From: Orbicella franksi
Lineage: Eukaryota
NCBI GenBank assembly: GCA_964199315.1
Contig: OZ116706.1
Location: 4,898,001 to 4,962,000, forward strand
DNA: 64,000 bases
Direction: 5' to 3'
Shown here: positions 26,659-26,703 of the stretch, piece after piece
Numbering within the stretch: the first letter of the stretch is position 1
Layout: every line of letters starts with the position of its first letter
Notes under the pieces: model-generated
What the model saw: only the letters and a program-made list of their open reading frames with translations
Told to the model about the DNA's origin: nothing
The model's database searches: none
Program-made: the position numbers and the translations under genes

Positions 26659-26703
26659 ACAGTGGACAGCTGTTTCGCCCTTCTTGGGGCTCGTCAGCAC
26701 TGT
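26659..26703 (-). ncRNA. Minimal type I hammerhead ribozyme
   Basis: Minus strand reads ACAGUG CUGACGA GCCC-CAAGAA-GGGC GAAA C-AGCU-GUC^CACUGU. Stem I is 6 bp perfect, the core CUGANGA/GAAA is complete, stem II is 4 bp, stem III is short with a palindromic ACAGCUGU, and the cleavage triplet is GUC (cut between 26665 and 26664). Confidence 0.88.

Follow-up and report, generated by a model that had tools for sequence, protein, structure and literature searches.

More than 6000 type I hammerheads, in 16 families, are already known in Acropora millepora, as are coral retrozymes and an origin from Penelope-like elements (PLEs). Among the described systems, the animal non-LTR retrozymes (Cervera and de la Pena 2020, PMC7229834) have RNAs of 170-400 nt that are highly self-paired, and the retrozyme of A. 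millepora measures 220-245 bp. The hammerheads of PLE pseudo-LTRs (min-HHRs; Cervera and de la Pena 2014, PMC4209133) are without helix III and loop 3 and have a long helix II with an unpaired nucleotide; in the same work, the canonical metazoan type I hammerhead has a 6-bp helix I, a 4-bp helix II and a helix III of 1-2 bp with a small palindromic loop. PLE insertions are recognizable by frequent truncation at the 5' end, by partial tandems, by a neighbouring copy that is inverted and 5'-truncated, and by a tail of 30-40 bp (PMC8557442). Additionally, solitary conserved type I hammerheads in amniote introns are mentioned as isolated motifs in PMC7229834.

The hammerhead analyzed here lies on the minus strand of a stretch of stony coral DNA of 64,000 nucleotides, the whole of which is called the window. 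It shares with the animal non-LTR retrozymes (PMC7229834) the canonical type I architecture (helices I and II have 6 and 4 bp, and helix III is short and palindromic), a non-coding unit that is both tandem and dispersed (the tandem array was seen in the family, the copy in the window being single), a GC content below 50%, a strongly self-paired unit RNA, and a stony coral host. It differs from them in length, the unit of 526 bp exceeding both the 220-245 bp of A. millepora and the usual 170-400 nt or ~150-450 bp; outside the ribozyme its sequence is, as far as testable, unrelated to the A. millepora retrozyme. As in the PLE min-HHRs (PMC4209133), the hammerhead is tied to PLE-style insertions, its palindromic 15.2-16.2 region implies action as a dimer, and most genomic copies are single and truncated; unlike the min-HHRs, it has canonical helices and a loop 1/loop 2 arrangement, and no ORF for a reverse transcriptase (RT) or endonuclease (EN) is attached. 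The amniote intronic hammerheads are the model for the retention considered in the original prediction; with them it has in common that a single hammerhead occupies the sense strand in the region of a host gene, but those are single-copy and deeply conserved, whereas for the motif in the window 86 identical repeat copies are counted and no constraint specific to the locus is apparent. We consider it probable, at about 0.85, that the hammerhead is part of a young, truncated and immobile copy of a non-autonomous, non-coding "non-LTR retrozyme", and that the ribozyme is likely functionless at this site. Among the animal retrozymes, the 526-bp family is possibly one that has not yet been described.

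Structure and predicted folding of the hammerhead

The motif and its extension are as follows.

26659 to 26703, minus strand: type I hammerhead core motif (RF00163, 38.8 bits, full model)
26654 to 26710, minus strand: extended hammerhead with distal helix I (minimum-free-energy fold and covariation)

On the minus strand, the Rfam covariance model RF00163 (Hammerhead_1) matches the window from 26703 to 26659 in its full length (model positions 1-45 of 45), with E = 2.9e-6 for the 64-kb window and a score above the gathering score of 34. The core is complete (CUGACGA, GAAA and the GUC triplet), and the predicted cleavage site falls between 26665 and 26664. Six base pairs make up helix I (ACAGUG/CACUGU) and four make up helix II, which is capped by a 6-nt loop; of helix III only the palindrome ACAGCUGU remains, with 2 bp and a 4-nt palindromic loop. 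Helix I is open, as in type I hammerheads, and is extended by an internal loop, UAC (26706-26704) opposite U (26658), followed by a distal helix of 3-4 bp, in which 26710-26707 are paired with 26657-26654 in the minimum-free-energy fold of a 74-nt stretch.

The sources of RF00163 are, we presume, the satellite hammerheads of newts and Schistosoma, which belong to the same Rfam family as the motif and share with it a short helix III that needs two copies for an active fold, but which differ from it in host element and lineage. The layout of a distal helix, a UAC bulge, a 6-bp helix I, the core, a 4-bp helix II and a CAANNA-type loop is one that we take to resemble Schistosoma. The core nucleotides, the 6-bp stem I, the 4-bp stem II and the palindromic stem III had all been described in the original prediction, and the full-length model match has the same coordinates. 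Its designation of the hammerhead as "minimal" was loosely right as regards the type I core; by the definitions of PMC4209133, however, the architecture is canonical metazoan type I, unlike the helix-III-less min-HHR of PLEs.

Weak matches to microRNA models were also obtained over hairpins of the window; all of them are far under their gathering scores and simply reflect the hairpins, and a microRNA identity was rejected. In another part of the window, at 17532-17606 on the plus strand, a tRNA-like gene was observed (58.8 bits in Rfam; anticodon UGA, Ser, by ARAGORN), with several non-standard acceptor-stem pairs and without a long variable arm; possibly, this is a pseudogene or else a repeat derived from a tRNA.

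The folding of the motif was analyzed with ViennaRNA. The predicted minimum of the isolated motif is inactive, with GCUG of the core paired with CAGC of the palindrome (-15.5 kcal/mol), and the catalytic monomer fold (-9.6 kcal/mol) is 5.9 kcal/mol above it. For two strands, the predicted minimum is a double hammerhead with an 8-bp intermolecular helix III (-35.1 kcal/mol), which is 4.1 kcal/mol lower than two separate monomers (-31.0 kcal/mol). This predicted preference for the dimer agrees with the published behaviour of the architecture (PMC4209133, in which the double hammerhead of Forster et al. 1988 is cited; axolotl retrozymes, PMC7229834), and the dimer dependence suggested originally is thus favoured by both the thermodynamic prediction and the literature. 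In tandem or multimeric transcripts of the element, neighbouring hammerheads would pair via ACAGCUGU into a double hammerhead, and such transcripts could process themselves to unit-length RNA. The single copy in the window is without a partner in cis; its ribozyme is predicted to be mainly in the inactive alternative fold, and it would need a partner RNA in trans.

The repeat family and the conservation of its ribozyme

The hammerhead is contained in a repeat, in which a further hairpin is found.

26601 to 27063, minus strand: hammerhead-bearing non-coding retroelement copy of 463 bp, the unit being ~526 bp (genome search and boundaries of sister loci)
26796 to 26844, no strand assigned: hairpin inside the element, with 23-bp arms (inverted repeat I4, with 91% complementarity; also folded as a long hairpin in the 526-nt unit)

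The 45-mer of the hammerhead occurs 86 times in identical form in the genome (497 Mb) and 209 times at up to 3 mismatches, while its reversed pattern, used as a control, occurs 0 times. The motif had been called solitary, which is correct within the window, where it is single, but not genome-wide. One locus of the family is a tandem 4-mer that repeats every 526 bp, each unit containing one hammerhead. When the coral's own genome was searched with 26250-27150 as the query, 492 candidates were obtained at first look, and the region 26601-27063 proved to be a repeat with at least 45 near-full copies of 93-97% identity, all of which match positions 352-814 of the query (26601-27063). In agreement with this, the DNA word depth across the element is ~350-1400 times the single-copy level (two DNA runs, summed).

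The boundaries of the element were deduced from 19 sister loci, each of which runs ~32 nt past the 3' end of the window copy, to one common stop, whereas their 5' ends are variable. The window copy is thus without the terminal ~32 nt present in 19/19 sister loci, as well as ~31 nt of the 5' end of the unit. No target-site duplication is visible at 27063/27064 and 26601/26600, and none is expected, because both ends of the copy are missing. One sister copy (L040, 567 bp) is longer than one unit, and in three loci (L033, L041 and L043) the copy abuts a head-to-head inverted, 5'-truncated partial copy. Many copies carry an inverted duplicate of ~60 nt of their own 5' end (L036:909-1030; L039, L042 and L047-L049), which is possibly a snap-back scar of insertion; this duplicate is centred on a natural AGATCT palindrome, so that a long perfect hairpin is formed. 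The signature described for PLE insertions in PMC8557442 is therefore present at the level of the family, and of these scars the window copy shows truncation only, with no inverted partner.

The unit has a GC content of 45%, and the longest ATG-initiated ORF on a dimer of the unit encodes 122 aa. The RNA of the 526-nt unit from cleavage site to cleavage site is strongly self-paired (-197.5 kcal/mol, z = -8.1 against 100 shuffles). Older subfamilies have most of the unit in common with it (86-94% identity), and a further family has in common only the ribozyme and a weakly similar tail.

To judge the constraint on the ribozyme, we used 41 distinct variants from the loci compared; model score was among the criteria of their choice, and this gives an advantage to paired positions. 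At the third pair of helix I, 22 variants have A-U, 15 have C-G and 3 have U-G; at the second pair of helix II, 16 have C-G, 18 have A-U and 6 have U-A; at a distal pair of helix I, 22 have C-G and 14 have U-A. The UAC/U loop is nearly invariant. The compensatory switches in helices I and II between subfamilies are clear and, at the level of sequence comparison, indicate selection on the ribozyme in the element.

At this particular locus, the pattern is neutral. Compared with 22 sister copies, the mismatch rate is 1.1% in the hammerhead and 3.9% in the remainder of the element, but the whole 3' ~180 nt of the element is equally low in mismatches (1.1-1.8%). The window copy carries six private substitutions in 463 nt (~1.3%), at 26801, 26824, 26931, 26957, 27022 and 27055, none of them in the hammerhead, and the probability that a 45-nt ribozyme escapes private changes by chance is ~0.56. 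A locus-specific conservation of the ribozyme was consequently rejected; with only six private changes, an intact ribozyme is expected from the youth of the copy alone, and its intactness would be owed to the recent insertion and not to a need of the CWH43 locus.

The insertion is not private to the assembled individual, because a contig (27031-27755) of the DNA run X19, ~2% diverged, crosses the 5' junction of the element with 33 nt on the element side; a contig of the DNA run X17 (27034-27606), ~0.2% diverged, is 1 nt under the junction-bridging rule. Since the 5' junction is present in X19, the copy has persisted since before the ~2% split. This persistence is compatible with neutrality, of which it is no proof.

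The CWH43/PGAP2IP locus

The element is located upstream of a gene on the same strand, and a second repeat lies between the two.

26034 to 26367, minus strand: CWH43/PGAP2IP exon 1, with the ATG at 26283; the 5' end is a minimum (X1 RNA contig)
24741 to 25057, minus strand: CWH43/PGAP2IP exon 2, first transmembrane domain (PF23022, E = 1.2e-21; RNA contig)
26326 to 26552, no strand assigned: MITE-like repeat of the hairpin type, its inverted arms measuring 42 nt (inverted repeat I1, with 95% complementarity)
33938 to 35387, plus strand: JADE-like coding exons, the nearest plus-strand gene (Pfam PHD_2, E = 1e-12)

Both transmembrane domains of PGAP2IP (CWH43), PF23021 and PF23022 in Pfam, are encoded by ORFs at 23187-25178 on the minus strand. 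In run X1, an RNA contig connects 26033/4 with 25056/7 on this strand, with GT..AG borders, and extends to 26367; the ATG at 26283 is the first in its frame and is in frame with exon 2. The predicted cleavage site is 381 nt upstream of this ATG. The placement of the hammerhead on the CWH43 sense strand, ~380 nt upstream of the ATG, was thus confirmed by the Pfam domains and the spliced RNA contig. The divergent, or bidirectional, CWH43-JADE promoter that had been assumed for this region is not established, as the JADE-like coding exons start ~7.3 kb away (their EPL1 match, E = 0.006, is weak and under the cut-off).

The hairpin-type repeat sits between the element and the ATG, and its left arm overlaps the CWH43 5' UTR. 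It is multi-copy, the DNA word depth being 20-400 times that of single-copy sequence, and contigs are interrupted at 26362-26367. A G-rich run (26560-26581) follows the repeat. An 18-nt similarity (I6) between 26279-26296, around the ATG, and the 3' part of the element has no extension on either side and was taken as chance.

Run X1, from poly-A RNA, covers the CWH43 exons at a depth of 23.6 and the intron at a depth of 0. The CWH43 mRNA contig stops at the repeat edge, 26367, because the hairpin-type repeat begins there, and this point is 234 nt from the element. In the unique flank upstream of the element (27161-27481), the RNA depth in this same CWH43 mRNA-containing run is 0. The transcription start of CWH43 should therefore be somewhere in 26367-~27160, a stretch that consists almost wholly of the two repeats, and a start within or just upstream of the element is possible. 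Over the element itself, the short contigs of X1 reach a summed depth of 99-272, at identities of at least 95%, which is a multi-copy signal in which DNA carry-over is possible; one of them (26620-26731) spans the uncut cleavage site and is not assignable to the window copy.

Other repetitive sequences were observed farther upstream. The repeat at 27482-27695, with inverted arms at 27576-27601 and 27747-27772, has a summed depth of up to 1285 in X1, and most reads of X21, a poly-A run available as raw reads, fall on it, with A-rich loose ends. At 27944-27989 and 28332-28616, there are short CGAATAG-type tandem repeats and mirrored ORF-like low-complexity sequence on both strands.

These data bear on two alternatives to a functionless copy. 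It could be proposed that the element or the adjacent hairpin-type repeat supplies the promoter or transcription start of CWH43, the ribozyme being a passenger. Such a role would be in line with an mRNA contig that reaches at least 26367, inside the hairpin-type repeat, and with the lack of transcription beyond 27161 in X1, as well as with the internal promoters reported for PLE pseudo-LTRs (PMC8557442). Contigs, however, cannot reveal RNA ends, and the raw-read run contributes 18 placed reads, 0 of them on CWH43 exons; we regard this possibility as very unlikely.

A still more doubtful proposal is that the copy now serves the host as a co-transcriptional cutter or insulator of upstream or read-through sense transcripts, possibly by pairing in trans with sister RNAs. 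The ribozyme is indeed intact, sense-oriented and close to the ATG, its insertion is common to a genome that is ~2% diverged, and the depth of the element contigs relative to that of CWH43 means that partners for a dimer in trans may exist. On the other hand, an intact ribozyme is to be expected by chance, the 45-mer is present in 86 identical copies, the monomer is predicted to misfold, and the copy is shortened at both ends, like a decaying or incomplete insertion. The retention for cutting upstream-initiated transcripts that the original prediction had considered finds no support in the chance value of ~0.56 or in the RNA depth of 0 in the unique upstream flank. Its counterpart, the cutting of antisense transcripts, is impossible, since the plus strand carries only the complement and has no match to a ribozyme model. 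Taken more broadly, a takeover of the ribozyme repeat by the CWH43/PGAP2IP locus, either as a promoter source or as a concentration-dependent cutter acting as a dimer in trans, has a very small probability; if true, the output of the gene would be tied to the expression of the retrozyme. We therefore return to the young and immobile retrozyme copy, the ribozyme of which most likely has no function at the CWH43 site.

Relation to Penelope-like elements

The genome contains more than 1000 GIY-YIG candidates, 149 of which are scored matches. We examined 30 GIY-YIG loci (L051-L080), among which one family is dominant, and found that they carry a hammerhead ~200 nt downstream of the endonuclease domain; in L069, for example, it lies ~205 nt after the start of the GIY-YIG match. 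This hammerhead is a true min-HHR, with a CUGAAGA core and a long helix II, and is built unlike the motif in the window. Because the GIY-YIG loci are min-HHR-bearing Penelope-like loci, both PLE machinery and PLE-type ribozymes are present in this genome.

By blast, no similarity was found between the 526-bp unit and the 30 loci, nor was an autonomous partner with the same 3' end found among them. A PLE-like ORF is absent within 1.5 kb in 18 of the 19 sister loci; the exception is L039, in which a PLE reverse-transcriptase-like ORF fragment, probably derived from nesting, adjoins the family copy. Around the window copy there is no ORF with RT and GIY-YIG, as would be expected of an autonomous PLE.

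The abundance of PLEs, the location of their hammerheads just downstream of the ORF and the RT-like fragment beside the L039 copy could be taken to mean that the window copy represents a pseudo-LTR fragment of an autonomous PLE, and not a part of a separate non-autonomous retrozyme family, but this is hardly credible in view of the sister loci without a PLE ORF, the non-coding 526-bp unit of the tandem array, and a min-HHR that is differently built in loci (mostly of one family) with no blast similarity to the unit.

The ~526-nt unit with its one canonical type I hammerhead was probably copied into the genome by PLE machinery, a dependence that we infer from the insertion scars and the literature (PMC7229834; bioRxiv 10.64898/2026.07.22.740005). 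The alternative of a recent retrozyme or PLE remnant, which had been offered from the outset beside a regulatory role, holds well for a truncated copy of a dispersed and tandem hammerhead element with PLE-type insertion scars.

For the CWH43 locus, the significance of the finding is small, as an intact-looking hammerhead beside a gene is fully explicable by a young repeat copy. This suggests caution in scans of coral genomes, in which hammerhead motifs number in the thousands. As a modest positive result, a longer (~526-nt) coral retrozyme-like family is described, with a canonical type I hammerhead and PLE-type scars. Its coexistence with autonomous PLEs that bear a different min-HHR fits the view of animal retrozymes as PLE-dependent passengers.
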